The translations under genes were made by a program, and so were the position numbers. Under the pieces are notes generated by a model. The model made no database searches and was not told the origin of the DNA. It worked only from the letters and a program-made list of their open reading frames with translations. From contig NW_015163647.1 in NCBI RefSeq assembly GCF_001447785.1, positions 198,692-262,691 of the forward strand: 64,000 bases of DNA, written 5' to 3'. Position 1 is the first letter of the stretch. Each line of letters starts with the position of its first letter. Source of the stretch: Gekko japonicus. Lineage: Eukaryota. Of this stretch, positions 26,737-62,006 are shown in pieces.

Positions 26737-26794
26737 ATGTGCGACTGCTTCGCCAGGCTGTTTGGGGTCTCCTGGTCCCCAGCCGCCCACGCTG
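26737..26794 (+). CDS. PRX: Predicted alternative first coding exon of periaxin (MCDCFARLFGVSWSPAAHA)
   Basis: ATG with A at -3, strong phase-1 donor G|gtaagg; peptide resembles the AHNAK2 N-terminus MCDCFHMVLPTW; phase-compatible with downstream exons. Confidence 0.7.
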
Positions 26795-29700
26795 GTAAGG
26801 GGGGACCGGGGAGGAGGGAGGGAGGGGGCCCCCCAGGACTCGGCTCGGCAGTAGGCCTGGGGGGGGGCTGCAGTTGACCCCTGAAAAGACACAGACGGCT
26901 GCAGGGTATGCCCACCGGCTGTGGGCCCAAGAGGGGGACCTGCCCCTAGGTGGGCCTTGTGGCTTCCTTGGCAGGTGCCCGAGGGCAAGGGGTGTGGGCA
27001 GGAGGCTGCAGCTGCTCTACAAGTGACTGCCCGGGGCAGGGGGGATGGATCCTGAGGGAGGGGCCAGGGCTGTGCTATGGGGAGCCAGCGTGGTCTCCTG
27101 GTCAAGGGCAGAGGCCTCTAATCACGGAACCATAGAGTTGGTGGGAGCCCTCCAGGGTCATCTAGTCCAGCCTCCTGCACAAGGCAGGGCATTCACAAAT
27201 ACCCCCCCTCCCCAAGCCCCCAGTGATCCCTGTTCCACGCCCAGAAGGTGCCAAAAACCCTCCAGGATCCCTGGCAAAAACTGTCTTGGAGAACTGACCC
27301 CAAAGCGGGGATCAGCATTTCCCTGGGAGCTTAAGAAAGGGCCACGAGGAGAACTAAGCAGCCCCGAGACAACCCCTTCCTGCCCTCCCTCTCACGGTCT
27401 GCCCAAGTTCACCGGATCAGCAGAAACCGGGAGAACCGGGTTCGACTCAAAAACTCCTCCACCTGAAGCCTGCCCGGTGGCCTTGGGCCCGTCACGGTCC
27501 TCTTTCCCCGCCTGCCTGACAAGGGGCCTGCTGTGGGGAGAGGCAGGGAAGGCCGCCTTGAGGTAGAGATCAGCGGGGCATAACCCACCCCCCCATCTCT
27601 CCTCCGCCTGCTCTGGGGGTGGGGAATCCAGCCTTACCCAGACGCTCAGGCAGAAGCCCCGCCTCGGGTGGGCGGGTGGTTGGACTGGCTGCGCCCCCCC
27701 ACCCCACTTCCTCTAAGTCCTCGCCGCCAGCCCCTCCCCCCGCGCCTGGCTCGCTCAGCCCCTTTGGGCGGGGGGNNNNNNNNNNNNNNNNNNNNNNNNN
27801 NNNNNNNNNNNNNNNNNNNNNNNNNNNNNNNNNNNNNNNNNNNNNNNNNNNNNNNNNNNNNNNNNNNNNNNNNNNNNNNNNNNNNNNNNNNNNNNNNNNN
27901 NNNNNNNNNNNNNNNNNNNNNNNNNNNNNNNNNNNNNNNNNNNNNNNNNNNNNNNNNNNNNNNNNNNNNNNNNNNNNNNNNNNNNNNNNNNNNNNNNNNN
28001 NNNNNNNNNNNNNNNNNNNNNNNNNNNNNNNNNNNNNNNNNNNNNNNNNNNNNNNNNNNNNNNNNNNNNNNNNNNNNNNNNNNNNNNNNNNNNNNNNNNN
28101 NNNNNNGGGGGGGCAGGCAGTGCGCCTCCCATCGCGTCCCCCCGGGGCGAGTTGTTCGGGCCGCAGGAAAGGCGGAGGGGGGGGGGAGAGAGGGAGACCC
28201 TGCCGTCCGTCCGTCTCCAGCCACCCACTTTCCTTCCCCGCCCCTGGGGTAACACCTGCGGGCCGGGGGAGCCACCCCCACAACTGGCCGCCTTTCGCTG
28301 GGGTGGCCACTGGCACTGTTCCCTCTCAGCGGAGAGCGTGTGAGCCAACTCACAGCTCTTGAGCCTCCGGCTCACACAGGTCCTGTCTGTCTCCGCTCAG
28401 GGAGGAGGGGGCTCCACCAGGGCAAACCAATTGGTGCCGGAGCCAACGCGCTCGCTCGCTCGCGACTCCCATGCCGGCAGCTCACACGGTAGAAGTTTTG
28501 CTCACGGGACTCCTCCACTGCCTAGAGGGAGCCTGGGTGGCCAGCCGGGGGGGGGGGGGGGGGGGGGGGGGGCGTGCGTGAGTGTCCGAGGAGGACGCGA
28601 GCCACCCGTGCGGCGGTAGGGGTGGGAGTGGGGGCATCAGAAGGGCGAGGCTGGGCATCCCGGATGGCTGAGGGGGGGCATCATCCCAGCATATGCTGCC
28701 CCGTGAGGGAGCAGACCTGGGGGGGGGGGGCGCTGCCAGCCCTTCACCTTTCTCGACCGGTGGGTGAGAAACTCCCGGAGGCCTCCCTCTGGTGCCAAGC
28801 CGGGGTCCGGCAGTTACTTTGCCAGGGGTCACAGCCCGGGCGGATCCTGCACCACCCTCTCCCCGTGGGGGGCAGAACCCGGCGGCTTCCGGAGCTGTGC
28901 ATTCCAGGGTGCAAGGCTGGCTCTCTTGGGGGCGCTGGGAGCCCTCTCGCTCGGCCTGGGGTGCGGGTGCCTGTTCTGGGCGGCGTCCTCATTCGCAGGC
29001 TTCGCAGGTGCCAAAGTTTCCATCAAAGCTCTGAGACATCCCTCGAAGATCCTATTGTGTTGTGCCTTTCAATTCCACCTGGTGGAGCATGAAAACAAGA
29101 CAGAGATAGAAGGTATAAAAGAATACCTCCAGGGAGGGAAGGTGTGGTATCCAAGGCTCCCTCTAAGCTGTGGAGTCCTGTGAGCAATAATTCTGCTTTG
29201 TGAGCCACTCTGGCATGAAAGCTGTGAGCCAGCGATTGGGCTGCTGCATCAATTAGTTTGCTCTGGAGCCCTCCTTCCTGAGCTAAGGTGTGAGACAGAG
29301 GCTAAGAAACTGTGAGCTAGCTCACACTCACTCAGCTTAGAGGGAGCACTGGTGGTATTCCACCCTGGGGGGGGGGAGGCTGGCAGTGCATTCTGGAGTG
29401 TTGCCAGCTCACCGAGGTGAGGGTCTTGGCAGAAGGGCCCAACAGGAGGGGACGGGTTGGGGTGCAGGGAATCCGTGTGCCCCCACCGCCGACCCTTCCC
29501 GCAGAGCGGGGATGCCATGTCACATGGTTGAACTGGATAATGCCCAGCAAGGCTCCCCTTAAGCTGTGGGGTCCTGTGAGCAAAAAATCTACTTTGTGAG
29601 CTACTACTGGCATTCAAGTTGTGAGTGAGCGACTGGGCTGCTGCATAAATTGGTTTGCTCTGGAGCCCTCCTTCCTGAGCTAGGACAAAAAGGTGTGAGC

Positions 29701-30678
29701 CGGAGGCTAAAAACGGTGAGCCAGCTCACATTGACTCAGCTTAGAGGGAGCCGTGAATGGGAGCCCCCACCGGGGGGGGGGCTTATGTGTTCCTTTTATT
29801 TAATTGAAACCTTCCTGTGCTGCCTTCCCACCCAGTTCAAGGTCCCCGCGGTGGCACATGTTTCAGCGCATCTCAGATACGTACACATATTTCAAACGGT
29901 TCAATCAAACATTATGAACAGGGAGGGGGGCTAGAAAGAGTTAGGGAGGGAGCGCCGGCCGAAACAAAAAAGGAGTCTTCGCCCGCTGGCGGAAGAATGG
30001 TCTCCCTGGGGAGGGAGTGCCAGAATTTTGGCACCTCGACCGGTGTTCCCTCTAAACTGAGTCAGTGCGAGCCAGCTCACAGATTTTTAGCCTCTGGCTC
30101 ACACATTTTTTTTGTCCTAGCTCAGGAAGTACGGCTCTGAGGCAAACTGATTTATGCAGGAGCGCAATCGCTCGCTCCCAACTTTAATGCCAGTAGCTCA
30201 CAAATTAGAATTCTTGCTCACCAGACTCCGCAGCTTAGTGGGAGCCTTGACCCCGACCCGACGGAGAAAGGCTTTTCTCGAGTTGCCACCCATCTAGCCT
30301 CAGATTGGGGGGGGGGCCAGCACCTGAAGCAGATGACTAGAGAGGTGGCGGACAGACTCATCCGTGACTCGGTGGCCCTTCGGTTGGCTGGATAGGCCCC
30401 TGGGGAAGTTCCAGGCAAGGCCCGAAGGAGGGAGCGCTTGGATTCTGCTGCCTACGCCTGTTGGGTGGGGTGGCTCTTTAGAGGGGGGGCTCCTGTGCTG
30501 TGCTCCGTCAGCCCCGCTTCTGCTGCGGGTGGGTGGGTGCACGGCTTCTTCCCCAAGGGACCCCAAGCTACAGAGCCATATTTCCAAATTAAACCGTCGA
30601 GTCGAACACCAGAGACAAAGAAGGTCCTGCTGCACACGCCCAAGGAGGGCCCCGCACCGCCGGGCTGGTGGTCCCAGG

Positions 30679-30887
30679 TAGTGTTCCCTCCAAGCTGAGT
30701 CAGTGTGAGCCAGCTCACAGCTTTTTAGCCTCCGGCTCACGCATTTTTGTGTTGGCTCAGGGAGGGTGGCTCCAGAGCAAACTGATTTATGAAGGAGCCA
30801 AATTGCTCGTTCACAACTTTACTGCCAGGAGCAGCTCACGGACTAGAATTTTTGCTCACGAGACTCCACAGTTTAGAGGGAGCCCTG
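30679..30887 (+). mobile_element. ~205-bp hAT-type MITE (representative of about 26 loci in the window)
   Basis: TIRs (C/T)AGTGTTCCCTCTAAGCTG...CAGCTTAGAGGGA(A/G)CA(C/T)TG; perfect 8-bp TSD GTCCCAGG. Other copies near 5655, 10182, 11762, 13035, 21917, 22815, 25859, 28314, 29152, 29548, 30040, 31224, 33636, 38826, 39489, 39601, 40265, 41533, 48752, 49145, 49956, 50166, 59382, 61746, 62654. Confidence 0.85.
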
Positions 30888-31977
30888 GTCCCAGGCCCCT
30901 GCCCAAGAGCCCCGTGGCTCACACCTCTGGCCCCCGCGGCCAAGGGTTCTAGAGCTCCCGGCTGCTGGTGAACAGGGCAGGCGCAGAGCCTCCACCGGCC
31001 GAGCACGGGGCCTCCTCAGCATGCTCTCTTGGTGAGCTTCAAAAGGGCGAAGGCAATCTGGGCCAGATTTCCTGGGGCAGGAACTGCTGTCCTCTTTCCC
31101 GCTCCCATTCCCAAATTGCCTCTTGCAGAAATTGGCAGGGAGATGGGAAGGAGCTGCCCCGTCTCTCTGCAGAACTCTTGTGAAGCCCCTTCAGCCTGGG
31201 AATTCTGCTGCCCTCCACGGTCACAAGGCTCCCTCTCAGCTGTGGAGTCTTGTGAGCAAAAATTCTGCTTTGTGAGCTCCTGGCATTGAAGTTGTGAGTG
31301 AGCTATTTGGCTGCTGCATTAATTAGTTTGCTCTGGAGCCATCCCTTCCTGAGCGAAGACAAAAAATGTGTGAGCCAGAGCCTAAAAAACTGTGCGCTAC
31401 CTCACACTAACTCAGCTTAGAGGGAACACTGCCTGGAACAAAGTTCGCGTCCGGTGGCACCTTAAAGACCAAGAAAGCAGCCCCCAGGGCACGGCTTGAA
31501 CCTCCGTGTGGCGCCAGGAGTCCCTTGTGGGTGTGCGGGCTTTTGGAGAAGGGCTTTGCAAAAGGCACAGGAGGGCCTTGTGGCCGGTGGGCGGGGCCTG
31601 CTGGGATTGAGCAGCCTCAGTTTCTACTGCACAGCTTCTGGGCCAAGAGGGGGCTGGATCGTGCTCGCTGGCTGGGCCGAGTCCCCTGTGCTCTTGTGCC
31701 GTCTGCTCCCCGGCAGTGCCCTGCTGCGTCCTGGGTGGAAGGAATCCCGGCTCATTCCCTCTGCCAGAAGAAAGGTGGCCTGAACTCCTAATGCCCCCAC
31801 TCCTCAGAGAAGCCTTGGAGCCCCCCCAGTCCCTTCCCTCACCACAACCCCCTGTGCCGTCTTCTGCCTCTGGCACTCTCCCCCACTGCTGCCGCCGCCA
31901 CCACCACCAGTGGGTCAGAAATCAGCCTCCAAGTGCTGAGGAGCGGGTTGGGCAGCCTGGAGCCACCCTGGGAGGGA

Positions 31978-32260
31978 GTTCCAGTTTGGTGTAGTGGTTA
32001 AGTGCGCGGACTCTGATCTGGGAGAACCGGGTTTGATTCCCCACTCCTCCACTTGCACCTGCTGATGTGACCTTGGGTCAGTCACAAGCTCCGGCACAGC
32101 TGTCCTTGAAAAAGAGCAGTCCTCAGTCAGAGTTCTCTCAGCCCCACCCACCTCACAGGGTGTCTGTTGTGGGAAGGGGGAGGGAAAGGAGTTTGTCAGC
32201 CGCTCTGAGACACCTTTTGGTAGTGAAGGGCGGGGGGTATAAATCCAATCTCTTCTTCTT
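31978..32260 (+). mobile_element. tRNA-derived CORE-type SINE with (TCT)n tail (representative of about 18 copies)
   Basis: Head TTTGGTGTAGTGGTTAAG...GGTTTGATTCCC, MIR-like core CCTCACAGGGTGTCTGTTGTG. Other copies near 2341, 5842, 8903, 12200, 13845, 15924, 17820, 18760, 19555, 21340, 23863, 32580, 34758, 40615, 45835, 46295, 46620. Confidence 0.8.
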
Positions 32261-35200
32261 ACTGTTTATTTAGGTATTTATTTAATTCATTCAATCCTAC
32301 CGCACCTTTCTCCCCAGCGGGCACCCAAAGCAGCTGGCATTGTCCTCCTCCATTTTTATCCTCACAACAACCCTGAGAGGTAGGTTGGGCTGAGAGAGTG
32401 TGTGTGACTGGATCCGGGTCACTCAGTGACCTTCCGTGGCATTAGTCAGGACTCGAACCTGGTTCTCCCAGATACGAATATCAAGTCCAGAGAATCCAGC
32501 ATTAACCACAACACCACCCTGGCTTTCTGAGCTGGGAGGGGGAGTCTGTACAAGCTCCTTACATGGCCTTGCAAGCGTAGAAGAAGAAGAGGAAGAAGAA
32601 GAGACTGGATTCATAGCCCGCCCTTCACTGAGAGTCTCAGAGCAGCTTACAAACTCCTTCCCCTCCCCACAACAGGCACCCTGTAAGGGAGGCAAGGCTG
32701 AGAGAGCTCTTAACAGATATTGCTCTTGAGAGAACAGCTGTGCCAGAACTGTGGCTTGCCCAAGGTCACCCAGCAGCTGCAAGTGGAGGAGGAGTGGGGA
32801 ATCAAACCCGGTTCTCCCAGATTAGAGTCCACGCACTTAGCCACTACCCCAGACTGTAGTGTAGAGTAAGGTGGAGGTCTCCTGCTCTCTGCCCCTCCCT
32901 GGTTCGCGTTCTCCAGGCCGGGCCTTGGACCGGGCTCTGGGGCTGCCGTTCCAGCCAGTGTGTCCTTCAGCCCCAGAGGGGCAGCCTCCCAGGCGGTGAC
33001 AAAATGGCCAACGTCTTGCTGTGGAGCTTCCGTGCTGGGAACTCCCTTTGCATTCAAGAGGATGTTCAGTTTCTCTCTCCCTCCCCCCCCCACCGCCCCC
33101 GTCCTAGCAGGAAAGAAGCGGATGGCTGTTTTCCTTTTCCGCATTGTTGGCTGCAGCCCATCCTCCTAGCCAGGCTGAGCCGCAAGGATGGGGGTGGGGG
33201 AGGGGCCGGGAAAGTCCTCTTGCAGGCAGGGCCCTTCTGCACCGAGCCAAGGCTGGGCCGTCCCCCTCCCCCCCCCCGTGCGGGATGCGGCCTGGCGGTC
33301 GGAGCAAGCAGGCCGGGGCACCTTCAGTCACTCCAGGGCTGATCCCAGTCTGGGTGGAGGAAACCTCTCTTTTCTGGCCCAAACTGGCTTAGGCGCCGCC
33401 GTGGCAGGCCCTCTGGGCCGAATCTCCCACTGGATCCCAAGAATGGGGAGGGGGGCTTTTCCACTCTGGTGCCAGGGGTGGGTGGGCCTGCTTTGGATCC
33501 TCAGGGGCGCTGCTGGGTGCAGAGCCAGGCCACAGGAGTCTCTCCCCGTCTGTGGCTCCAGCGGAGCGCCTACAAGGGCCGCCCAGCAATGCACACAAAC
33601 ACTGGGAGGGGGGCCAAAGCGGGTGGGGGTGGCATCTAGTGTTCCCTCTAAGCTGAGTGAGTGCGAGCCAGCTCACTGTTTTTTAGCCTCCGGCTCACAC
33701 GTTTTTGCCTTAGCTCAGGGAGGACGGCTCCAGAGCAGACTACTTTATGCGGTAGCCAAATCACTGGCTCACAACTTTACTGCCAGGAGCTCACAAAGAG
33801 AGAATTTTTTGCTCACAGGACTCCACAGCGTAGAGGGAGCTTTGGTGGCGTCCCTTGTTATGAATCTTTCAGTTTAGCTGGGATTACACTTCCCCGTGGA
33901 GCCAAGCTGAGGATTGGAAAGAGGAATATAGGGGACAGTGCAGGAGGGAGAGGGGTCAGCACAGACCGAAAGCTGGAGAGAGAGGGGGGGGGGGCTCAAT
34001 TTTAACTGCNNNNNNNNNNNGTGTGCTTCTATAGAGGTTCGGACAGTGGGGGGACTTTGAGATGAGCTATGGATCGTGTCCACAGATTTATTTATTTATT
34101 TATATTTATTTATTAGTTACATTTGTGTCAAAAGCAAGCATGCAATTAAAGTGCTCGCAGTAACAGTCATTCCTTCATTACGTTAAGGTGGCGTGCTTTA
34201 GATGTAACACCAGAGTTCCCGACTCAGCGATCTTCCTGTTTCCCACGACAATGTGGCTCAATCTCCAAACTGGGCCGGCCCTTTACCACAGATGTTAATA
34301 ACAGTGGTAGTTGGTGGTAGTAGTGGGCGGCTCCTGGTTGAAGGTCTGGCGGAAGAGCTCCGTCTTGCAGGCCCTGTGGAACTGTAAAAGGTCCTGCAGG
34401 GCCCTGATCTCCTCCGGGAGCTCATTCCACCAGTGAGGAGCCACCACTGAGAAGGCCCTGGCCCTAGTCACGGCGAGCCTGGCATCCTTAGGGCCTGATT
34501 AGTCGATGTTGTGACCCTGACCGTAGTGCTCTCTGGGGTATGTGTGGGGAAAGGTGGTCCCTCAGGTATGTCGGACCCTGGCCACATAGGGCTTTTAAGG
34601 TAAGTACCAGCACCTTGAAGCAAATTCGGAAGGGAGAGAAGACTCTGCCGGAGAATGGCGTGGCTGGGCCGTGGCTTCTTTAGGCCCCTTCCCACACGGG
34701 CCTGCCAAGCAGGTAACCTGAGAAGCTGCATATTGGACCTTGTGTCCAAAGATGTGCTGAGAGCCAGTTTGGTGTCGTGGTTAGGAGCGCACGGACTCTA
34801 ATCTGGGAGAACCAGGTTTGATTCCCCACTACTCCTCCACTTGCACCTGGCTGGATGACCTTGGGCAAGCTGTAGTTCTGATATGCGCTGTCCTTAAAAA
34901 AGAGCCATTTCTGTCAAGACCTCTCTCAGCGCTGCCTACCTCACAGGGGGTGTCTGCTGTGGGGAGGGGGAGGGAAAGGAGTTTGTAAGCGGCTCTGAGA
35001 CACCTTTGGGTAGTGAAGGCCAGGGTATGAATCCAATCTCCTCCTCCCCCTCCCCCTCCTCCTCCACCTTTGGGTAGTGAAGGGTGGAGTATAAATCCAA
35101 TCTCCTCCTCCTCTTCTTCCTCCTCCTCTTCTCCTCCTCCTCCTCCTCTTCTCCTCCTCTCCTCCTCCTCCTCCTCCTCCTCCTTCTTCTTCTCAGGGCA

Positions 35201-38200
35201 GCCCTGCACTTCAGTCCTGAACAGCCACAGTTGCCCCCACAAGGTCTTAGATGCGGCACATTTACGCGGGTGCTGGGCAGAGCAACTGCTAGCCCCCAGG
35301 CGGCGGGGGAGGGGGGCTGGCTGTTTTGAGGAGGGGGGGCTCTGTTAAAATGGCCCCAAGATGTATTTGCTGGTTAGCGGCCCTAAACCCGTCTTCCTTC
35401 CTGGCCCCGCCCGCCCGCCATGAGGAACAGCCCCGAACGCCAGAGGTGCGTTGGGCCCAGGGTCCAGGGGCACAGCTTTGATACGGCCAGCATTTCATGG
35501 GCTCAGCCCCCCCCCCGCTACAATGCCTGGGATTTTCCAGGGTCTGACGGTGCCAAAAACCTTGAGAACGGCAGTGAGGCTCGGCAAATCTTTGCCACTG
35601 CTGTTTTTGAAAGGTTTTGCCAAGATGGCTGCAAGGGGCATCTGGTCACACCCAGGAAGGATGTGTCTGGACTGGCGACAGAGAGGCGGCCCAGGCTCCA
35701 ACGCCGGGTCAGAGACAGGATGCTGGGGGGGGGAGCTGAAGGCAAGCGGCCCCCTGCCAAGTACAGGAAGGTACAGATGGCCCCAGAACAAGTCACCATT
35801 CCAGGGCAGATGGGAAGACGACCTGGTCCCAAGTTGAACTCCTTCCCCAGAGAGAGTCATCTGTCTCTCCTGTTTATTTATGTTACTTATTAGTGTTTTC
35901 CGCCTGAAGACTTTTTGGTTTCATTACGGCATACCCTCAATAATTATTATTGGCCCTCCTCCCTGGTTCTGGTGGTGGTTTGTGTGTTTTTGTTTTATCA
36001 TCTTCTAATAGCAAAGTCGGCTCATCTTTGGATACTCAAGTCCGGTGACTGGAGTTGTAAAGGGGCAAGACAGATCTTCCCCCAAATCTGAAAAGGGCCC
36101 TACGTTTGGGGGGGGGGGGGGCGGGGGCGGAGTGAAATCCAAAAAAACACATTGGTTTAAAAAACACAGAAATGATAAAAGGAGCGCCTGTCGCTTTAAG
36201 CAACAGACTCCCTCAGTGGGTGTTGCTAGGCAACCACAGCATTCCAGGCTTCAGTTTCTGTGAGTAAAAAGGCCGGAGGAGGGGGCGGGGCCCTTCCCAG
36301 GCCTATTTTGGCCTCTGAGGGAAGACTCAGTGGGGCCAGGCCAGAGGGGGGTTGCCAGCTCCAGGTTGGGAAATTCCTGGAGATTTTGTGGTGGAGTCTG
36401 AGGAGGGCAGGGCTTGGGGAGGGGAGAGGCCTCACCCTCCAGAGCAGTCATTTTCTCCAGGGGGGACAGATGTCTGTCATCTGGAGTTCGGTGGTCATTC
36501 TGAAGCCCTGCGCCTGGCAGCAACCTTTGACTGGCTTGATACCAGCCGACTTGCATGACTGGACTAGGCCTGGCTGCTTACTACTCTTCCAACAGCAGCC
36601 ACCCTATGGAAGCCCGGATGGTCCAGTGGTTAGAGCTCCAGAGTAGGGTCTGGAAGACCCAGGTTCGAATCCCCAGCTCACTAGGTGATTTGGGGCCAGT
36701 CGCATACTTTCAACCTAGCCTACCTCACAGGGTTGTTCTGAGGAGAGGAAACTGCGTAGGGGGAGGGATGCAGAGGAAAGTAAGGTGCCCCCCCCCACAA
36801 GTCTTTGAGGGTTGGTTCTGGCCAAGTGGCTAGTACTGCACAACTGAGCCACCGTTTTCCTAGGCAGAGGCTGCTGGGGGGAGAGGGGCAGATAAATATA
36901 GGCTGGCTGTTGGGTGGGAAGGGGAGAAGGAATCAGAAAATGGGGAGAGGCTGTGGGGGCTCTCAGGAAAGGGAGCAAGGAACCAGTGGGGGAGGGCGAG
37001 ATGAGGTGCCCCCCCCCGCAACTCCTCGCAGGTCCCCACTTGTCAGTTCATAATTTCAAATGTTTTTAGTTGTTCAAATGTTTCTTCTGTGCACTGCCTT
37101 GGGGGGGCCTGATTGGTTGGAAAGGCCGCACGAAAGCATTTTTAAATGAGTGATAAAGGGGCCGTTTCCTCCCTTCCTGGCCCCACCCACTGGCAGAACT
37201 GGGGCCCCCTCTGTTGGGTGGCTTTGAGATGTGCTGTGGAACAGGCAAGAGTGCCCCTGGGCACGTGCAGAGCGTGCCTTCACCCTCCTTGGGTGAATGA
37301 ACTCGCAGATTCAGTGCCCTGAATGGTCACAGGTCACACCATCAATCAGTCAAGGTGCACCCCACACACACAACTTGCAAAGGATTTCATAATCCCATCG
37401 CAGGGACACAACAAAGGCAGGCAAGAAATGGCAGGGAGTGAAGGACAAACAATACCGGGGTGTGTGGGAGGGGGGGCTATCCAATCTTTGAGCCCCCTCC
37501 CCACTCGCCCCTGTGTGTGCCCTGTCTGGTCTGTTGAGGGCTGCTCCTTGGCCAACTCTAGCGGGCCTCTCTCCCGGCCCCCGCCAATTCTTGCACTGCT
37601 TCAATTGCTTTTTACCCCCCCCCTCCCCGTTTCTTCCTGAAATGTGTGGAACAACAGTGGAAGGAAATGAGCCTGAAAAGGTTCCCTCTGTTCTAGGTAT
37701 TGGGGGTGGGGGGAGGCTGGGCCATTTCCTTCCCTTCCCCGTATATGTGTAGGGTGGGTGCCTCATCCTTGGGTGGGGCCCGCGTCTTGGTCTTTCCTTT
37801 GGCTTCCAGCCGACTGGCGTTTGGACTGCCCCCCCCCCGCCCCACATCCTGGGACTTGCCTGCCAGCTCCCAGCTCGGTTTTTCAGTGGCTGGGCTTGGT
37901 CTGGCCTCGTGAAAGGGTGGTGCCAATGAAGGCAGCGTCAGGCGGGGGAAGTGCCTGTTCTCCGCAGCCGGGGTCCGCACTGCCGGCTTGGCTGGTTCAT
38001 GCGACAAAAATGCTCAGTGCGTGGAGCCCGTGTGTGGAGGATGCACCACTCGCTGCAGGCAGGACGTCCTTTCCCCACTCTCTGTGGAAGGCCTGTCCCT
38101 CTCTGGCACGTATGTGGTCGCCCAGAGATCAATCGATTCCTCGGGTACGTTTTTTTAAAAACCCTGCCGTCCTTTTGAGGCGCTCGGAGCCACCTGCGTT

Positions 38201-40026
38201 CCCTGCTGTACCCTCACAACATCCTTGTGATAGAACAAAGTAAAGAGTCCAGTGGGGGCACCTGTAAGACCAAGAAAGTTTTATTCAAGGCGTGATGCGC
38301 GTGCACGCTTCATCAGACGATGAAGACAGATGAGGTAGATTTGGCAGAGACAGTGACTAGCACAAGGGAATCTTCACTGGCAACTGTGGAATTTGAACAC
38401 GAAGAGTCGGACTGGACTGTGCGACTGAACAACAACAACTCTGACCACTGCACTGCACTGCACTGCCGGCGTGATCACGGCTGCAATCCTATGCCTGCAC
38501 CCCTGGATGTCAGGCCCTCTGAGCCAAGCAGGGCTGGCCCCCGGGGTGCACGTGGGTGGGATTGGGCCTTTACGTGCATGAGTGAGAGGAGGGGGAAGAA
38601 GGGAGTGGATGCCGGACTGCCGAGATTCGCACAGGATCTGAGCCAGTGAGCTTTGGGATAAGTGTCCTTCGTCTGTGAGGTGTCCCTGGAGTTCTGTTTT
38701 GTTTGGCAACAGTAGATGGACACAGCCGCCCCTCTGGGACGCATGAGATCCCCGCTGACCCTTTGCCTGACCGGCCGTGTCCTTCTGCCAGGCAGTTCCA
38801 CGCGAGAACGGAAGAGGGTCCCACCCAGTGTTCCCTCTCAGCTGAGCGAGTGCGAGCTAGCTCACAGTTTTTTAGCCTCTGGCTTGCTCATTTTTGTCTT
38901 AACTCAGGAAGGAGGGCTCCAGAGCGCACACTGATTTTATGCAGTAGCCAAATGGCTCACTCGCTTTAAAGCTAGCAGCTCACAAAGCAGAATTTTTGCT
39001 CACAAGAAGACTCCGCAGCTGAGAGGGAGCATTCAACCAGTCCAACATCCTCTCTTGCGCCCAGAGGCTGGGGTGTCCCCCAAGGCTGCCTCCTGGCGGT
39101 GGCACCCAACGGCCGACTGCTTCTGGGTGGGGAGGTCCCCCTGAGTCCCCTGGCCAGGAGCCCGTGATGCCCAGCTCCCTCCGTCGCTCCTCAGGCCCGG
39201 CCACCTTGCGGAGGGGCAGCTCCGGGCCTCCCGCGTGCTGAGCCAACAGAATGCCTGGCATGCTCCCCGCGCAGTTGCCAGGCCAGGGGGAGGCGGCTGG
39301 AGGGGAACAAGCCGCTGTTTGTCTGCCGGAGAGTGGGAAGCCACCGTTCCACTGCATTCGCTGGGGGGGGGGGGCGGGGGGGGAGGGGCGGGGCGGGGGG
39401 GGGGGGGTTTGTTGCTGGTGCCTGCTTTTGCACCCACCCGCCTGGCACACCTGAGGGCGGGGAGCAGGGAGCGCTGAGGGGCTGAGATCAAGGCTCCCTC
39501 TAAGCTGTGGAGTCTCATGAGCAAAAATTCTACTTTGTGAGCTACGGGCCTTAAAGCTGTGAGTGAGCCATTTGGCTCCTGCATAGTTTGCTCAGGACTA
39601 CAAGTCTCCCTCTAAGCTGTGGAGTCTCGTGAGCAAAAATTCCACTCTGTGAGCTGCTGGCATGAAAGTCGTGAGCGAGCGATTTGGCTCCTGCGTAAAC
39701 TAGTTTCCTCTGGAGCCCCTGAGCTGGGGCAAAAAAATGTGTGAACCAGAGGCTAAAAAACTGTGAGCCGGCTCACACTGACCCAGCTCAGAGGGAACAC
39801 TGTGTGAGGTCTCTGAGCACATCCGGAGCCCTGTGCGCAGGAGCCTGCTGGATCCGGCCCAGGGCAGCTGGCTGCTTCCAGGGGGTGCTATGAGGAATGC
39901 TGGGAGAGCAGGCCTCTGCTGACGGGTGCCCTTGGCCCTTCCGACTGGCCTCCGGCGGCCAGAGAGGCTTTGTCCTTCTCCTGCAGAGGCCGGGGACTGG
40001 GCACAGGGGGGACTTTCTGCCCGCAG

Positions 40027-40076
40027 AGGCCGGGGCTCTGGCACTCAACCTCCGTGGCCTGCAGCCTCTGTCACCG
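40027..40076 (+). CDS. PRX: Candidate small PRX exon (EAGALALNLRGLQPLSP), phase 1-0
   Basis: Acceptor ctttctgcccgcag|, weak donor CCG|gtagct; supplies the required phase change; a competing acceptor exists at 39987. Confidence 0.45.
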
Positions 40077-42689
40077 GTAGCTGAGCCCGTCCCTGTGGCT
40101 CACGGCCCTCGACTGATCACGGCTGGCCAGAGAGCGGCAGCTCCAGAGGAGAAGGACGGCTTGTGGAGAAGCACCTTCTTTCCTTTGTCCTGAAGCCGCT
40201 GGGTGATCCCGTGGTCCTCCTTTTCGGCAGGGCTCCTCCGTCCGCCCAGCTGGAACTGCCCCCCCACTGTTCCCTCTAAGCTGAGTTAGTGTGAGCCAGC
40301 TCACAGTTTTTTAGCCTCCAGCTCACACACTTTTGTCTTAGCTCAGGAAGGAGGGCTCCAGAGCAAACTCATTCATGCAGTAGTCACTCACAACTTTGAA
40401 TGCCTGGAGCTCACAAAGTGGAATCTTTGCTCACAGGACTCTGCAGCTTAGAGGGAGCGTTGCCCCCCACCCGCTGCCGCTCTCCCATTCGTGGGAGTGT
40501 GAAGGAGGCAAACCCCATCTTCCCTGACGAGGGAGCCAGGACTCGCGGCAGCTCAGACTCTGAGAACCTTCTTGGTCTCTCAGGGGCTCCCAGACGCGTG
40601 TCTACCCCCCACTCTGTTTGGTGTAGTGGTCAAGTGCGCGGACTCTAATCTGGGAGAACCGGGTTTGATGCCCCACTCCTCCTCCACTTGCACCTGCTGG
40701 ATGACTTTGGGCAAGCCGTAGTTCTGGTCAGAGCTGTCCTTGAGAAAGAGCCGTTTCTGTCAGAGCTCTCTCAGCCCCACCTGCCTCCCAGGGTGTCTGT
40801 GTGTGGGGAGAGGGAGGGAAAAGGAGTGTGAAAGCCGCTCTGAGGCTCCCTTGGGTAGTGAAGGGCCATGGGGTGTAAATCCAATCTCTTCTTTTTGGTG
40901 AGGGATGGGGGGACCCCTGTCAGCTCAGCTCTGGGGTGGTTCCGGCCTGGAGCCGTGTGTGTGTGTGGGGGGGGTGCCAGTCTGCGCTCTGAGGAGGTGT
41001 CTCGGAACGGGGCCCAGAATGCCAGCTATGTCCCCGCGGGCTTTGCCGAGACGCAGCGTCCTTTTGTCTGCCGGGGCCTGGGAATGCGCAGCGCAGAGCC
41101 CTGACCTTTCGGGGAATGGCACGGGGCAGTGTGGGTCTTTGGCACCCAAGTGAGCGTGGGAATGAAATGCTGCCCATCCTCAGGGCCTGAGACGCTGCTG
41201 GCGCTTGCCGTGCTGCTTGCTGAACAGGGTTGCCGGCAGAGCAAGGACGGAAGGCAGTGGATTGGGGGGGGGGCGATATCAGGATTTGAGGACCGGTCAG
41301 GAGGGCTGCTGGTGCCCCCTTAGTCAGAGGCAGTCTACCTGTGAGGAGCTGCTGCCGCCGACACCAGGGAGGATGGCTAGAGCCAGTGTGCCTATTTAGT
41401 GCGTCTTTGTAGAGCACGCGTTGGAAAGCAGAGGCCCCACCCAGCAGGGCTGTTCTCTTGCCAAGACTTTGGGGCGGAGGGCTGCCATTCTGCGACAAGG
41501 GTCAGCTGGTTCAGGGGGGCACCCCCCCCAACCAATGCTCCCTCTAAGCTGCGGAGTCCTCTTGTGAGCAAATATTCTACTCTGTGAGCTCTGGCATTAA
41601 AGTTGTGAGTGAGCGATTTGGCTCCTGCATAAATCAGTTTGCTCTGGAGCCCCGTCCTTCCTGAGCGAAGGCAAAAATGTGTGAGCCGGAGGCTAAAAAA
41701 CTGAGCTGGCTCACACTAGCTCAGCTCAGAGGGAACACTGCTCCCGACTGCACGAGGAGCGCTACGATTGCACTAGGAAGTTGTCTTTTCTTTGCACTGC
41801 AGAGCTAAAGGGGACCCTTCACTTCTGTGGGAGGACAGTGTCCGTAGGCCTGCTGCATAGCCCCATCACATCTTGAGTGGCCGGGGGGGGGCTCTCTCCT
41901 CCCCTCCCCTGACCCAGTCCTGCCGTGACGCCTGCCCCGCTCCTTCCTGGGGCCAGGGGATTTTTTTATTATTATTATTTTTAATTTACTTGGGCTTTTA
42001 CCCCACCCTCCCGCCGAAGCGGCTCAGGGCGGCTTACAACAATTTAAAACAACATACGGTATAAAACCAGCAAATACAGATATAAAATACAATAAATACA
42101 GGGATGGATACCCTAGGGCGTGGAAGGAAACTGCACAGTCACCGCACAGCCAGAAGCCCAGGTAATTAACCGCCTGGTTCCTTTCCACAGCTGCAGAGGG
42201 CCACGTACCAGAAAGCCACGTGAGCAGGACCAGACGACAAGCACCTGTGAGTAGCCATGCGCCCGCCCCCCCCGCCACACTTAGGAATGGATGCTGCAGA
42301 ATACCAGCCTGGGGGGGGGGGAGTAGACCGAAGGCCGTGGTAGGCAGCTTGTCCACACGGCCACCGGTTGCGATTCGGAGGGTGGGGTGGGGGACACATG
42401 TCCCAGTCCGAACGGACCCACGCTGCGCTTTGTAGCATTTATTGTTTATTTATCATAGTTATTAATTGCCTGATCCCCACCGTAGTGGGGGCCTCTGGGT
42501 GATTTGCAGGCTTAAAACCGTACAAACGTAACAACCACATCCAGCAAATTATCCAGTAGATGAGGAAAGCGGCTGAAGTTTCTGGTTTTTCTCTCCCACG
42601 TCTGTTCAGTGGATGCTACGCAAGGGTAGAGGAGAAAGTAAGCTCCTAAGGAGCGAAGGATCCAGGCAGGGTGCCGGCCGTGAGGTAAA

Positions 42690-43490
42690 CCGTCGCTGCC
42701 CTCAGCCAAAGGCCTGGCCGGGCATCTCTGCCTGACAGGCCCCGTGGAGTTGCAAAAGATCCTGCAGGGCCCTGATGTTATTCAGCAGAGAGTCCCACAG
42801 GGTCGGGGCCAGGTCCTGGTGGGGGACACCCAGATCTCTCTCGGGCCGGGAACCACCAGCACGTTAATCTGTGAAGAAGAGCGCAGTGCTCTTCCAGGGG
42901 TGTAGCAGGGGAGGTGGTCCTGTAGATGTGTCGGTCCCAGGCCACACCAGGCCTTAAAGGTCAGAACCAAAACCTCGAACTTGACTCAGTGCTCCACTGG
43001 AAGCCAGTGCCGCTGGGGTAGTGCAGGTTGAATAGGTGCACTTCGCAATGTTCCCGTCGGGACACGCGCCGCCGCATTCTGTACCAGTTGGCGCTTCCGG
43101 GTCAGTCTCAAGGGCAGGACAGCGTAGAGCCAGTTGCAGTCGTCTAGCCTGGAGGTGACCACAGCGTGGATTACTGTGGCCAGGTTGGAGCGCGACAGGA
43201 AAGGGGCCAGCTGCCGGGCTTGGCATAGATGGGAAAATGCCACCCTGGCTGTATGTGTAACCTGGGCCTCCATACTGAGGGAGGAGGAATCCAGGGTCAC
43301 ACCCAAGCTCCTGACGGACTGCGCCGATGACAACGGCGCCCTGTCAAGGGCTGGTGGGCTGAACCCAAGTCCTGAAAGCCCCTCCCCCCAGCCACAGCAC
43401 CTGCGTCTTTTTCGGATCCAGTTTCGGCCGGCTCTTCTTCAGCCATCCTGCCACAGCCTCCAAACCCATGGCCAGATTGTCTGGGGCGAC
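42690..43490 (-). mobile_element. L2 LINE fragment (RT C-terminal region)
   Basis: VRSLGVTLDSSSLSMEAQV...ATVIHAVVTSRLDDCNWLYAVLPLRLTRKRQLVQNAAARV. Confidence 0.85.
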
Positions 43491-43997
43491 ATCTAGGTGG
43501 CCGCTCAAAAGCTGCTGCTGCTGCTGCGTCCCCCCAGGAGTCCACTCGGAGTCCAGGCCCTCCAGTGGCAGAGCGCGGCTCCCCCTCTGTCCGTGTGTGA
43601 CCCCTTCCCAGGCCAGAGCTGCCTCCATGGGGCTCTCTTTCCCCACTCATCCCTGGTGCTCCATGGCTTGCCAGTTGGCCTGGCCAGCGGGGCGTGTGGG
43701 GAGCCGCACAGGTCCCAAGCGGGTCAGCAAAATGCCCTTTTGTGCTTCAGCAGTTACGGTGGTCAGACTCTGGTAGCCTCGGCCCGCCTCTGTGCAGGAA
43801 AAGCTGAAGGCCACTGTGGGCTCCAGGGAAGAGCCCCTGCTTGGCCTGGCGTGCAGAAGGGCCCCGGTTCAATCCTCGGCACAGTTTAAAAGGAAAAGGC
43901 TGCAGTGGCTGATGGGAGAGACCACTACCGGAAATCCTGCAGAGTGGACAAGACCGACCTTGATTAGAAGGCAGCTCCATGGGTTTTCATGATTTAA

Positions 43998-45340
43998 GGG
44001 GTGAGGTCGTGGCTCAGTGGCAGAGCCTCCACTTGGCATGCAGAAGGTCCCAGGTTCGATCCCCGGCATCTCCAGTTAAAAAGGACCAGGCAGGAGGTGA
44101 TGGGAAAGGCCTCCGCCTGAGTCCCTGGAGAACTGTAAAGAGGGGGTGTGGCTCAGTGGAAGAACCTCTGCTTGGCATGTGGAAGGTCCTAGGTTCGATC
44201 CCCAGCATCTCCAGTTAGAAAGGCCCAGGGGCAGGAGGTGATGGGAAAGACCTCCGCCTGAGACCCTGGAGAGCTGTAAAGAGGGGCCGTGGCTCAGTGG
44301 AAGAACCTCTGCTTGGCATGCAGAAGGTCCCAGGTTCAATCCCCAGCAGCATCTCCAGTTAAAAAGGACCAGGCAGGAGGTGATGGGAAAGGCCTCCGCC
44401 TGAGTCCCTGGAGAACTGTAAAGAGGGGGTGTGGCTCAGTGGAAGAACCTCTGCTTGGCATGTGGAAGGTCCCAGGTTCGATCCCCAGCATCTCCAGTTA
44501 GAAAGGCCCAGGGGCAGGAGATGATGGGAAAGACCTCCACCTGAGACCCTGGAGAGCTGTAAAGAGGGGCCGTGGCTCAGTGGAAGAACCTCTGCTTGGC
44601 ATGTGGAAGGTCCTAGGTTCGATCCCCAGCATCTCCAGTTAGAAAGGCCCAGGGGCAGGAGGTGATGGGAAAGACCTCCGCCTGAGACCCTGGAGAGCTG
44701 TAAAGAGGGGCCGTGGCTCAGTGGAAGAACCTCTGCTTGGCATGTGGAAGGTCCCAGGTTCGATCCCCAGCATCTCCAGTTAGAAAGGCCCAGGGGCAGG
44801 AGGTGATGGGAAAGACCTCCGCCTGAGACCCTGGAGAGCTGTAAAGAGGGGCTGTGGCTCAGTGGAAGAGCCTCTGCTTGGCATGTGGAAGGTCCCAGAT
44901 TCAATCCCCGGCATCTCCAGTTAAAAAGGACCAGGCAGGAGGGGATGGGAAAGACCTCCGCCTGAGACCCTGGAGAGCTGTAAAGAGGGGCCGTGGCTCA
45001 GTGGAAGAGCCTCTGCTTGGCATGCAGAAGGTCCCAGGTTCAATCCCCGGCCTCTCCAGTTGAAAAGGGCCAGGCAGGAGGTGATGGGAAAGACCTCTGC
45101 CTAAGACCCTGGAGAGCTGTAAGGAGGGGGCCGTGGCTCAGTGGAAGAGCCTCTGCTTGGCACGCAGAAGGCCCCAGGTTCAGTCCCCTGCAGCATCTCC
45201 AGTTAAAAAAGACCAGGCAGGAGGTGACGTGAAAGCCCTCCGCATGAGACCCTGGGGAGCGGCTGCCAGCCTGAGTAGAGAAGACTGACCTTGATGGATT
45301 GAGGGGGAGGGGGGGGTCTGACTCAGTATGGAGCCGCTCC
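43998..45340 (+). repeat. Tandem array of nine tRNA-derived SINE (Squam3-like) 5' units, ~141-bp period
   Basis: Units carry A box TGGCTCAGTGG and B box GGTTC(G/A)ATCC or a close variant; only the last keeps the 3' tail; degenerate extra copy at ~43806-43990. Confidence 0.85.
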
Positions 45341-45472
45341 GTGTGTGGGCCCGGGACGGCTGAGTGAATCGGTGCTGAGGCTGCTGGGTGTGAGGGGTCC
45401 TGGTGGTGGTACCCAGGATGGGTGGGGTCTCGCAGTGACTTTCTCCTCTCCCCTCCTCCCGCCGTCTTGCAG

Positions 45473-45574
45473 GCAGCCGAGTCCCAAAGGAATGACCAGC
45501 CCGCTCATGTCCAGCCCTCCACTGGCCCGCACTTGCCCCTGTCCCCGGAGGAGGCCGCGGACCCAGACAGAGCT
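45473..45574 (+). CDS. PRX: PRX upstream exon (AAESQRNDQPAHVQPSTGPHLPLSPEEAADPDRA), phase 0-0
   Basis: Long polypyrimidine tract + gcag| acceptor, donor |gtaagt, 102 nt with no stop. Confidence 0.7.
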
Positions 45575-47215
45575 GTAAGTTTCTGGCCGGGACGGGGGGG
45601 GGGATTTCTCTTCCAGGGGCTCTGGGGAGAGGTAAAGTTGCCAGCCTCCAGGTCAGGTCTGGAGGTCTCCCAGAATTACAGCTCATCTCGGAAGACAAAT
45701 ATCAGTCCCCTTGGAGAAAATGGCTGCTTTGGAGGGCGGACTGAATGGCACCATGCCCTGCTGATTCCCTGCCCCTTGGCAAACCCCACCCTCCCCAAAT
45801 ATCCAGGAATTTTCCAACCCAGAGCTGGTAACCCTAGAGAGCCAGTTTGGTGTAGTGGTTAAGAGCACGGACTGTGATCTGGGACAACCGGGTTTGATTC
45901 CCTGCTCCTCCACATGCAGCTGACGGTGTGACCTTGGGTCAATCACAAGTTCTCTTTGAGCTGTTATCTCAAGGGCAGTTCTTGAGAGAGCTCTCTCAGC
46001 CCCACCTACCTCACAAGGGTGTCTGTTGTGGGAGGGCTTCTAGTGTCCTGGCCCCACTGCGGGACCTCCTGACCGCACCTGGTGTCTTTGGCCACTGTGT
46101 GACAGTGTGTTGGATCAGGCCAATGGCCCATCCAGTCCAACACTCTGTCACACAGTGGCCAAAAACACCAGGTGCCATCAGGAGGTCCAGCAGTGCGGCC
46201 AGGACAATAGGCCTCCCACTGTTGCCCCCCCCCCAGCACCAAGTGCATCACTTGTCCCAAACCGAGAGTTCCTATCTATACCTTGTGGCTAATAAGAAGA
46301 GGAGGAGGAGATTGGATTTATACTCTGCCCTTCGCTACCCAAAGGAGTCTCAGAGCAGTTTACAAACTCCTTTCCCGTCCCCTCCCCACAACAGACACCC
46401 TATGGGGGTAGGTGGGGCTGAGAACTCTTGACAGAAACTGCTCTTTTTTTCAAGAACTGCTGTGCCAGAACTATGGCTTCCCCAAGGTCACATCAGCAGG
46501 TGCAAGTGGAGGAGGAGTGGGGAATCAAACCCGGTTCTCCCAGATTAGAGTCCGCGCACTTAACCACGACACCAGACTGGCTCAATAGCCACTGGTGGAC
46601 CTCTGCCCCATATGTTCTTATTGTGGGGAGGGGAAGGAAAGAGATTGTAAGCTGCTCTCTGAGGCTCCTTTGGGTAGTGAAGGGTGGAGTATAAATCCAA
46701 TCTCCTCCTCCTCCTCCTCCTCCTCTTCTTCTTCTTTGGAGGGGAGTGACTGGAAGCACTGTCTGGCATGCCGAGTACACAGTTTCCCTTGTGGTGTCAC
46801 TTTCATTCAGGAAGGGGGGGGTCCAGTCGGTCATTCATGCACTCCTCTTTGAGCGGAGGTGGGCCTCTGTCCAAAGCGGGATTCCAGGGAGGGGGGAAGG
46901 ACGTCTGCCACGGCCGAGCGACCCAGAGGGGGAGACGCTGGCTCTGGGTCTAGCAGAGCTGGCCCGAGGGGAGCCGTCTTCTGTTTCGTGCCGAAGCCGG
47001 TCTGAAACCGGTTCCCCTCGCTCAGCCCTGCAGATCATCATAGTTCCGTGCGGGGGGGGGGGGAGGCTGGAGACTGCAGCAGAGACTCCCCAAATACCTT
47101 GAAATGACAGGCGGTTCCGAGAGGGAAGTGGGGGCCGCTGAGCTGACAGTCAGGCTGGCTGAGAGAGGCCAGTGTGGAGGCGGCCTCTGAGCTCTGACCG
47201 TGGGGGCCCTTGCAG

Positions 47216-47368
47216 GCTCAGAAGGAGAGGCTCCATGCGGAGCTGAAGCGGGTCCTGCAGCGGAAGGGGGCCAGCCGGGCCAGCTCCGAAGAGGCGGTGG
47301 AAGAGAAGGTGGAAGAGGAGGAGACCCAGGCTCCAGGGGGGATGGAGGCCCAGCTCCGCAAGATGGAG
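47216..47368 (+). CDS. PRX: PRX exon containing the canonical start (ATG 47342, MEAQLRKME) plus 42 open upstream codons
   Basis: ttgcag| acceptor; AQKERLHAELKRVLQRKG...GGMEAQLRKME; donor GAG|gtgagc; the last 9 codons parallel mammalian MEARSRSAE. Confidence 0.85.
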
Positions 47369-47513: not shown

Positions 47514-47673
47514 AAGACCATCGAGACGTCGGAGCTCTTGGAGATCATCGTGGAGACGGAGGCCGAGGCCGGGGTCAGCGGCATGAGCGTGGCCGGAGGA
47601 GGGAAGCAAGGCCTCTTCGTCAAGGACGTGCTGAAGGGCTCCCCGGCCGCTCGGGCCCTGAGCCTCAAGGAAG
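47514..47673 (+). CDS. PRX: PRX PDZ-like domain exon A
   Basis: (K)[52 protein letters not shown]; CAGAAG tandem acceptor (47514 or 47517); donor G|gtgagg. Confidence 0.93.
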
Positions 47674-48192
47674 GTGAGGGCGCTGGGGGGGTGNNNNNNN
47701 NNNNNNNNNNNNNNNNGCGGGAGGAAGTGGGATGCCAGAAACAACGTCCACGACAAAAATGACGAGGAGTCAATAAAGATAAATTGCAAAAACGTTTACT
47801 TTGGCAATTCTGTAACCCCACATAATTACTCTAGTAAATGTTTTTGCGGCTTATCTTTACTGACTCCTCGTCGTTTTTGCTCCAGCCTCCAGGTGGGGCC
47901 CGGAGCCTCTCCCAATGCTCCAGTTGCTCTCCAGGAGACACGGAGGCCAGCTCCCCTGGACAAGATGGCTGCCTTGGAGGCTGGACTCCGCAGCACGGGG
48001 CCCTGCCCGCCCCAGGCACCAACCCCCAAACCTCCCAGAGCAGACAGCCACGGCCCCTGGGGGTATCTTTGCCCCGTGTCTTTGTTGCCTCCCTGCGCTG
48101 AGCAGACCCAGAGGGCTCCTAGGGGCCAGTAGTCTCCGGGGGCCTCCCCACAGCTCTCCCCAACGCCTCTCCCCCCTCCCTCCCTCCCGCAG

Positions 48193-48386
48193 GCGACCAG
48201 CTCCTGAGCGCCAGGGTCTATTTCGACAACATGAAGTACGAAGACGCCCTGCAGATCCTCAAGAGCGCCGAGCCGTACAAGGTCTCCTTCTGCCTGAAGC
48301 GGACCGTCCCCAGCACCGACGTGACTCGCAGCCCCGGAGCCCCCACCTTCGAAGTGAGGGGGCCGAGAGCCAAAATGGCCAAGCTG
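48193..48386 (+). CDS. PRX: PRX PDZ-like domain exon B
   Basis: [40 protein letters not shown]...GPRAKMAKL; donor |gtgagt. Confidence 0.95.
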
Positions 48387-49144
48387 GTGAGTGGCACGGG
48401 AACCCTCGGGGGCAGCTGCCCCCTCACCCCCACCCAAAGGTGTCCAAGGCGCACACACATGCTCCACGTCCTGAGGCCGTCTTGTCCCAAGCCGGCTCCC
48501 CCCCCGCTCCCTGGCTCCCCCGAGGGGTCTGCTGACCACTACTGGAGACAGCGCCCTGGGCTTGAGGAGCAGTGGCGTCCGAGCTGTTCCCCTGCTGGGT
48601 TTTTAGCAAGCCCTTCATCCAAAGGAGCTCAGGACGGCAGAGGTAGCTCCCACCTTTCCTCCTCCTCCTCTGACATCCCGGGGAGGTAGGTCAGACGAAA
48701 GAGACCACGGGTGGGCCCAAGGTCATCAGGGGACTCTACGGCTGATAGGGGCAATGCTCCCTCTAAGCTGCTGAGTCTCGCGAGCAAAGATTCTACTTTG
48801 CGAGCTACGGGCATTGAAGTTGTGAGCTAGCGATCTGGCTGCTGTGTAAATGGGTTTGCTCTGGAGCCACATCCTTCCTGAGCGAAGGCGAAAAGTGTGT
48901 GAGCCGGAGGCTAAAAAACTGTGAGCTGGCTAAAAAACTGTGAGCTGGCTCACACTCACTCAGCTTAGAGGGAACACTGGTTGCAGGGGTCTTTGAACCT
49001 CGGTCTCGTTGCATCCAAAGCCATCCCTGCTCTGGCCCAGGCGTGCTTCCCTCCAGGGAGGCCAAATTGCGACACGCGGTGCCACAGCCACGCAGAGATG
49101 CGGCCTGTCCTCCACTCCAGAGAGCCACGCTGAAGCCTGGTCTC

Positions 49145-49638: not shown

Positions 49639-50408
49639 AGTGCCACCCTTCCTGCGCTGGGCAGAAGGGGCAGGCTGGGTGGTAGCCAACAATCCTGACC
49701 TGGGCAGGAGAGGCAGGCTGGTTCTGTGCAGGTCCCAGAGGCCGGCAGGACGCCCGGCGGCTTAGATGCCCTCTTTTATTGGAGCTGCTCAAGGCTGAGG
49801 GCATTCCCGTATCAGAGGTCGTTCCTTCCCTGCGAGAAGAGGTCTGCCCCTTCCTGTGCCCACCCAAAGAGCCTCTTCTCCCCCCCCCCGGCACTGAGCA
49901 CCCATCTGGTGCCCTTCTCTCCCTTGGGTGGGCGGGCTGGCTAAGGGACGGAGACCAGTGTTCCCTCTAAGCTGAGTTAGTGTGAGCTAGCTCACAGTTT
50001 TTTAGCCTCCAGCTCACAGATTTTTGTCTTCGCTCAGGAAGGATGGCTTCAGAGCAAACTAATTCATGCAGCAGCCAAATCGCTGGCTCACAACTTTAAT
50101 GCGAGTTGCTCTCAAAGTAGGATCTTTGCTCACAGGACTCCACAAGTTAGAGGGAGCATTGCAGCAAGTGCTCCCTCTAAGCTGAGTCAGTGTGAGCTAG
50201 CTCACAGTTTTTTAGCCTCTAGCTCTCACATTTTTGTCTCAGCTCAGGAAGGGTGGCACACAAGAGCAAACTAATGTATGCAGCAGCCGAATCGCTCGCT
50301 CACAACTTTAATGCCAGTCGCTCACAAAGTAGAATTGTTGCTCACAAGACTCCACAACTTAGAGGGAGCATTGACAGAGACTCACCCAGCCCCTCTTTTT
50401 CCCTCCAG

Positions 50409-61671: not shown

Positions 61672-62006
61672 GTAGACGGGAAGCGCTCGGCCCATCTGGC
61701 CACAGGGACACCACTCCCCTTGCTGATGGGTGGGTGCGGGTCGGCACGGTTCCCTCCAAGCTGAGTTAGTGTGAGGTTTTTTTAGCCTCCAGCCCACAGA
61801 CGTTTTGTCTCCGCTCAGGAAGGGATGGGGGCTCCAGAGCAAACTAATTCGTGCAGGGGCCAGATCGCTGGCTCCCGACTTTAATGCCAGTAGGCGCTCA
61901 CAAAGTAGAATTCCTGCTCACAAGACTCTACAGCTTAGAGGGAGCACTGGTGGGGGGTGGAGTGGAGTAGAGTCCCGGACAATATATTTTTTTTGTGGGG
62001 CCCCAG

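Follow-up and report, generated by a model that had tools for sequence, protein, structure and literature searches.

Periaxin, the product of PRX, has been described as beginning at its PDZ-like domain, and AHNAK2, which has this unusual PDZ-like domain in common with it, is its only recognised sequence relative (PMC7072810). Human PRX contains seven exons, with L-periaxin encoded by exons 4-7; exons 1-3 of mammalian PRX are described as non-coding, and the deletion c.25_27+9del at the donor of human exon 4 places 27 coding bases in that exon (PMC10352492). In this study, we analysed a window of 64,000 nucleotides from Gekko japonicus (contig NW_015163647.1, positions 198,692 to 262,691 of the forward strand), and found that it is the PRX locus of this gecko, bounded by a SERTAD1-like open reading frame (ORF) and HIPK4. 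From comparison with orthologues, the first four PRX exons are very probably coding, adding 114 residues before the annotated start, and the resulting protein is very probably the orthologue of the long periaxin isoform listed in RefSeq. Like mammalian PRX, which encodes L- and S-periaxin and is the CMT4F gene, the gecko gene contains seven exons, a start codon located 27 nt before the end of exon 4, a PDZ-like domain encoded by exons 5-6, and a giant exon 7. In contrast to the non-coding exons 1-3 of mammals, exons 1-3 and most of exon 4 of the gecko are open and conserved.

The only database protein for G. japonicus periaxin, 'PREDICTED: periaxin [Gekko japonicus]' (XP_015263137.1), has 1714 residues and begins MEAQLRKME. 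The translation of the large exon from the acceptor at 50409, which lies in the big ORF 50253-55172 (1639 aa) that includes the last periaxin exon, is 100% identical to it. The reading frame was checked exon by exon, and every search reported here used single exons or database proteins. The exons of the corrected chain are as follows.

26737..26794, + strand: PRX exon 1, coding part; ATG, 19 codons and one base (MCDCFARLFGVSWSPAAHA), 58 nt, donor GTAAGG, end phase 1
42191..42246, + strand: PRX exon 2, orthologous; 56 nt, phase 1 to 0, reading A/AEGHVPESHVSRTRRQAP, acceptor ttcctttccacag, donor GTGAGT
45473..45574, + strand: PRX exon 3; 102 nt, phase 0 to 0, carrying the LSPEEAADPDRA block
47216..47368, + strand: PRX exon 4; 153 nt, in which 47216-47341 supply the final 42 extension residues, with the AQKERLHAELKRVLQRK block among them
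47514..47673, + strand: PRX exon 5, first half of the PDZ-like domain; phase 0 to 1, Pfam PDZ with E 8e-5
48193..48386, + strand: PRX exon 6, second half of the PDZ-like domain; phase 1 to 0
50409..55172, + strand: PRX exon 7, the large exon; 1587 codons and stop

With exon sizes of 58, 56, 102, 153, 160, 194, and 4764 nt, this chain reads through 1828 codons and a stop, and the N-terminal extension of 114 residues begins MCDCF. The annotated start codon at 47342 (MEAQLRKME) lies within the final 27 nt of exon 4. Exons 3 and 4 have AG acceptors, GTAAGT or GTGAGC donors, no stop codons, and end phases of 0 and 0, and the acceptor of exon 2 at 42191 is pyrimidine-rich. An earlier note on this DNA had proposed four upstream exons, an extension of 112 residues, and a total of about 1826. 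Its exons at 26737-26794, 45473-45574, and 47216-47368 stand, with regard to splice signals, phases, and orthologue matches, whereas its second exon at 40027-40076 is a chance segment, and both of its lengths are replaced by those given above. Directly observed here are the chain of exons and its reading frame, as well as the orthology and the amino-acid conservation of the chain.

For many species, RefSeq lists the extension under periaxin isoform X1 or X2, as the earlier note had suspected. Long entries include XP_077174784.1 and XP_077174785.1 (Paroedura picta X1 and X2), XP_062818194.1 (Anolis carolinensis X1), XP_072835603.2 (Pogona), XP_028597631.2 (Podarcis), XP_075771679.1 (Pelodiscus), XP_075463075.1 (Ascaphus), and XP_015196476.1 (Lepisosteus), all of them like the gecko chain in their four-exon N-terminus, their four conserved blocks, and their exon borders. 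Both long and short isoforms are listed for Paroedura, Anolis, Pogona, Podarcis, Ascaphus, and Pleurodeles. Exon 3 is a cassette exon in other lizards, being skipped in Paroedura X3 and X4 and in Lacerta X2, and these exon-3-skipping forms confirm the exon borders RRQAP/.../AQKE, with exon 2 of the Paroedura forms ending at RRQAP. In amphibians, transcript-like Logan contigs of 7-11 kb (P0066, P0082, P0087) contain exons 2-4, the PDZ region, and the large exon in one ORF. Unlike the species with an annotated long form, G. japonicus has only the 1714-aa entry, and its annotation omitted the long isoform. The existence of the isoform is already public for many species and is new only for the annotation of G. 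japonicus, in which an 1828-aa periaxin isoform is to be placed beside the 1714-aa form.

A search with the large exon retrieved the periaxins of about 100 vertebrates, 13 of which begin MC[DE]C[FL] and 25 of which have a QKE[KR]LHxELK block upstream of the PDZ domain. The carriers of the extension are geckos, iguanians, lacertids, turtles, frogs, gar, carp, trout, and a galaxiid, as well as a salamander (P0121). Four blocks make up its conserved part, namely the N-terminal MC[DE]CF..[IV]F[GR]V[ST]W[ST]P (block 1), E..ESH[VA] (block 2), LSPEE..[AP][DE]R (block 3), and [AV]QKE[KR]LH[AE]ELK.VL (block 4), and the linkers between them diverge freely. In tblastn searches the orthologue blocks fall in the same relative order in the exons of the window.

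26737: block 1; E 2e-8 (Paroedura, Pogona), 5e-6 (Ascaphus), 1e-4 (gar)
about 42187-42246: block 2; E 1.5e-7 (Gekko kuhli), 3e-7 (Paroedura)
45476-45574: block 3; E 1e-16 (G. kuhli)
47216: block 4; E down to 4e-14

Exon 1 (26737-26794) matches three lizards at 15/19 residues. Identity to Paroedura over exons 1-4 is 15/19, 15/18, 23/34, and 28/42, with 65% in the large exon; for G. kuhli, whose models lack exon 1, it is 17/18, 31/34, and 35/42 over exons 2-4 and 81% in the large exon, and all 53 residues of exon 5 are identical. In exon 4, the residues Q2, K3, E4, L6, H7, E9, L10, K11, V13, L14, and K17 are invariant among 29 sequences from fish to gecko; these are 11 of its first 17 residues, a level of conservation equal to that of the PDZ core. 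All 13 aligned periaxins that start with MC have both C2 and C4, with an acidic residue (Asp or Glu) at position 3 and Phe or Leu at position 5, and the [IV]F pair and the Trp are conserved. The MCxC exon and its frame are found in other squamates and amniotes and in further vertebrates, as MC[DE]C starts in these 13 periaxins and as tblastn matches. Over its 114 codons the extension is intact, with conservation at least as high as that of the protein body. Because residues and frame are kept from fishes to gecko, the extension is best read as coding and not as leader: judging from this sequence conservation, the upstream exons encode a conserved periaxin extension, not a mere 5' untranslated region (5'UTR), and the extension is ancestral at least to bony vertebrates.

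All matches of region searches with the extensions of Ascaphus (1-100) and Pelodiscus (1-105) were periaxins, and they came from amphibians, turtles, and squamates. Among the matches of the large exon, the ratite and mammalian periaxins begin at the short-form Met. Shark periaxin entries begin at the PDZ region, and the extension is absent from the bird and mammal periaxins retrieved by large-exon and extension-region searches. Within the limits of those searches, the aligned sequences document the extension in bony fishes, amphibians, turtles, and squamates. Most of the non-mammalian vertebrate groups sampled have a periaxin with a conserved N-terminal module, in which the helix block of exon 4 is conserved about as much as the PDZ domain. 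A Pfam scan found no family that covers the extension, and the ESM Atlas gave no usable match. These results suggest that exons 1-3 of the neuropathy gene, non-coding in mammals, once encoded protein, while knowledge of the human periaxin protein is unaffected.

The extreme N-terminus also ties periaxin to AHNAK2. Human AHNAK2 (Q8IVF2) begins MCDCFHMVLPTWPG, i.e. MCDCF, according to supplement file 3 of PMC11199558, and in its list of human MC-initiating proteins 'MCDC' is confined to AHNAK2 and a single unreviewed fragment. The AHNAK2 start given in the earlier note is thus correct, as is its statement that the two proteins are paralogues with a common PDZ-like domain (PMC7072810). In AHNAK2, MCDCF is followed by hydrophobic residues and TW, which fits the periaxin pattern MC[DE]CF..[IV]F.V[ST]W. 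Since chance is a very unlikely source of a pentapeptide that is identical at both N-termini and precedes hydrophobic residues and [ST]W, homology of the exon 1 motif between PRX and AHNAK2 is probable on sequence grounds. The 60 N-terminal residues of AHNAK2 contain no clear counterpart of the ESHV, LSPEE, and helix blocks. Two shorter echoes of AHNAK2 put forward earlier do not survive: 'RGLQP vs RQLQP' stems from the misplaced exon 40027-40076, and in 'EAAD' the AAD of EEAAD is squamate-specific, with frogs reading EEIKDADR and gar EEPETPER.

It is possible, though we consider it rather unlikely as a whole, that MC[DE]CF is an ancient module of the common ancestor of PRX and AHNAK2, an N-degron-resistant and dually S-acylated anchor that was lost from the periaxin of mammals and birds and kept in AHNAK2. 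If this is true, the loss turned coding exons 1-3 of mammals and birds into 5'UTR, and membrane targeting of both non-mammalian periaxin and AHNAK2 would depend on the two cysteines. A literature search gave no mention of the string MCDCF, of the module, or of a long non-mammalian periaxin. The reading of the extension as an ancestral module, common to periaxin and AHNAK2 and lost from the periaxin of mammals and birds, together with the acylation idea, appears undescribed and modest in reach; the module offers a testable idea of membrane attachment.

The mechanism that we tentatively favour as the most likely one combines escape from the N-degron pathway with dual S-acylation. A transcript with exon 1 would initiate translation at 26737. 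In the favoured mechanism, the initiator Met would be removed from the long isoform, the resulting Cys-acidic-Cys N-terminus would escape the cysteine N-degron pathway, and the two cysteines would be S-acylated, tethering the scaffold to the membrane as the sequence MDCLCIV does for PSD-95. PSD-95 is dually palmitoylated on MDCLCIV, and palmitoylation targets it to membrane domains (PMC2063950). It is also a PDZ scaffold, and its extreme N-terminus, like that of the long periaxin, combines a Cys-x-Cys pair with an acidic residue and a hydrophobic run, although the likeness is a mechanistic analogy without homology. Dual S-acylation fits the long isoform because its Cys-x-Cys pair is invariant and accompanied by a hydrophobic run. 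A literature search gave no report of acylation of periaxin or AHNAK2 at N-terminal cysteines, and a lens palmitoyl-proteome paper leaves periaxin and AHNAK unmentioned.

For the fourth block, AlphaFold2 was run with the alignment of exon 4 and gave a predicted helix, with per-residue confidence (pLDDT) of 81-84 over residues 1-20 and low confidence thereafter, and the invariant L6, L10, V13, and L14 would lie on one face of it. The helix that the earlier note had seen in exon 4 is retained in this form, as a predicted helix for which the term 'amphipathic' is not endorsed.

Alternatively, the conserved N-terminal Cys could be an oxygen-sensing Cys/Arg N-degron that sets the stability of the long isoform, and not a lipid anchor. 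Cys2 is invariant, as such a degron would have it, and many MC-initiating proteins are substrates of ADO and ATE1 (PMC12377780). However, position 3 is always Asp or Glu, and N-termini of the MCD and MCE type are under-represented in ATE1 substrates, are weak targets of ADO oxidation, and are favoured by NatA for acetylation (PMC12377780), so that a cysteine N-degron is disfavoured. Since it also leaves the second invariant Cys and the hydrophobic run unexplained, we regard the degron as improbable.

Several points weigh against the reading of the extension as a translated, membrane-anchoring module. The long isoform of G. japonicus is predicted from genomic sequence. The presumed continuity from exon 1 to exon 2 spans two gaps of estimated size, listed below. 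If the transcript begins further 5', two out-of-frame ATGs, at 26564 and 26600, could act as upstream ORFs. The Kyte-Doolittle hydrophobic moment of the exon 4 helix is not above that of shuffled sequences (0.79 vs 0.74 +/- 0.36). Acylation of the cysteines is an inference. The likeness of AHNAK2 and PRX was judged only by eye; it covers about 14 residues and requires one gap. Finally, no AHNAK2 was found among the matches of the extension-region searches or of phmmer with exon 4, both of which are limited by their length windows, by E <= 10, and by the shortness of the motif; against 1.8e9 representatives, phmmer with exon 4 gave three matches, all of them periaxin.

The extension might also be no protein at all, with the upstream exons of the gecko serving as 5'UTR only, as in mammals, their open frame being a remnant or accidental, and the 1714-aa protein being the sole product. 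The sole database model of G. japonicus starts at 47342, in a strong Kozak context (GGGATGG), and exons 1-3 of mammalian PRX are non-coding. This reading has to contend with a frame intact over 114 codons, with residue conservation equal to or above that of the protein body out to fishes, and with the retention of the extension in the closest relatives, G. kuhli and Paroedura. In addition, the ATG at 26737 has an A at -3, and the 134 open codons upstream of it contain no other in-frame ATG. We therefore think a purely untranslated leader quite improbable and return to the coding extension, beside which transcripts beginning further downstream would yield the annotated 1714-aa form. In Paroedura picta, exon 4 reads ...APLLRKME, without the short-form start Met of Gekko, and because this Met is absent the short isoform X5 of Paroedura begins 7 residues later.

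Concerning the second exon, we counted the segments between exon 1 and exon 3 that are open, bounded by AG and GT, and of phase 1 to 0, and applied a stricter filter of a GTRAG donor and a pyrimidine-rich acceptor. The open AG..GT phase criterion is satisfied by 1720 segments, and 23 of them also pass the stricter filter. The segment at 40027-40076 was rejected as PRX exon 2, being a chance open segment with a weak donor and without an orthologue match. That it is nevertheless a real exon 2, either constitutive or a mutually exclusive alternative to 42191-42246, has in its favour an AG acceptor with a moderate pyrimidine tract, a GT donor, a kept frame, and no stops. However, it is one among the 1720 such segments, it is absent from the 23 because its donor, GTAGCT, fails the GTRAG filter, and nothing resembling its translation was found in any orthologue: local alignments match 3-7/16 residues, no better than background, and tblastn of orthologue N-termini against the whole window gave no + strand match there. 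The segment at 42191-42246, which matches 17/18 residues of G. kuhli and 15/18 of Paroedura, has, in phase 1 to 0, the E..ESH[VA] block that 40027-40076 lacks. Inclusion of both second exons together gives a stop, and all annotated long isoforms contain the ESHV exon and not 40027-40076. We thus consider a role for 40027-40076 highly improbable and keep 42191-42246 as exon 2. A second AG at 42197, 6 nt into this exon, forms an in-frame tandem acceptor (CAG/CTGCAG) whose use would drop two alanines.

The two gaps between exon 1 and exon 2 are the following.

27776..28106: N run, assembly gap in intron 1
34010..34020: N run, assembly gap in intron 1

Both lie inside intron 1 (26795-42190), at least about 980 nt from the exon edges, and no reading frame crosses either. 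Although two gaps of estimated size separate exon 1 from exon 2, a wrong scaffold join across 27776-28106 or 34010-34020 that would leave exon 1 not truly upstream is extremely unlikely, since exon 1 is orthologous to periaxin exon 1 of other species and lies between the SERTAD1-like ORF and the remaining PRX with the expected order and orientation, that ORF being on the exon 1 side of the gaps. Further N runs at 6758-6806, 9434-9754, 19815-19827, 47694-47716, and 55748-56021 touch no PRX exon; the run at 47694 follows the exon 5 donor by about 20 nt, within the intron.

Upstream of PRX, the SERTA motif in the ORF 10558-11676 (+ strand) is weak (E 0.0065, below the Pfam cut-off), and downstream the HIPK4 kinase domain is found in a single ORF at 60007-61761 (+ strand, E 5e-52). 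The order of the SERTAD1-like ORF, PRX, and HIPK4 matches the mammalian gene order. Mammalian S-periaxin arises by intron retention. In the gecko, no stop interrupts the reading frame in the 100 codons that follow the exon 6 donor (48387-48689), and an S-periaxin-like intron-retention product is possible.

The introns of the locus also contain repeats. In the intron just 5' of exon 3, at 44005-45260, nine units, each about 141 nt long, are arranged in tandem, and the 5' part of each unit resembles the head of a tRNA-derived short interspersed nuclear element (GGCCGTGGCTCAGTGG...GGTTCGATCCCC). The first 52 codons of the ORF 50253-55172 are a copy of an interspersed repeat with the core GTTCCCTCTAAGCTGAGT...GCTCACAG, and not an exon. 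This repeat is present in at least 11 copies in PRX introns 1, 2, and 6 (28302-50383), examples of which are found at 30667, 33625, 38814, 40253, 49133, 49944, and 50154.

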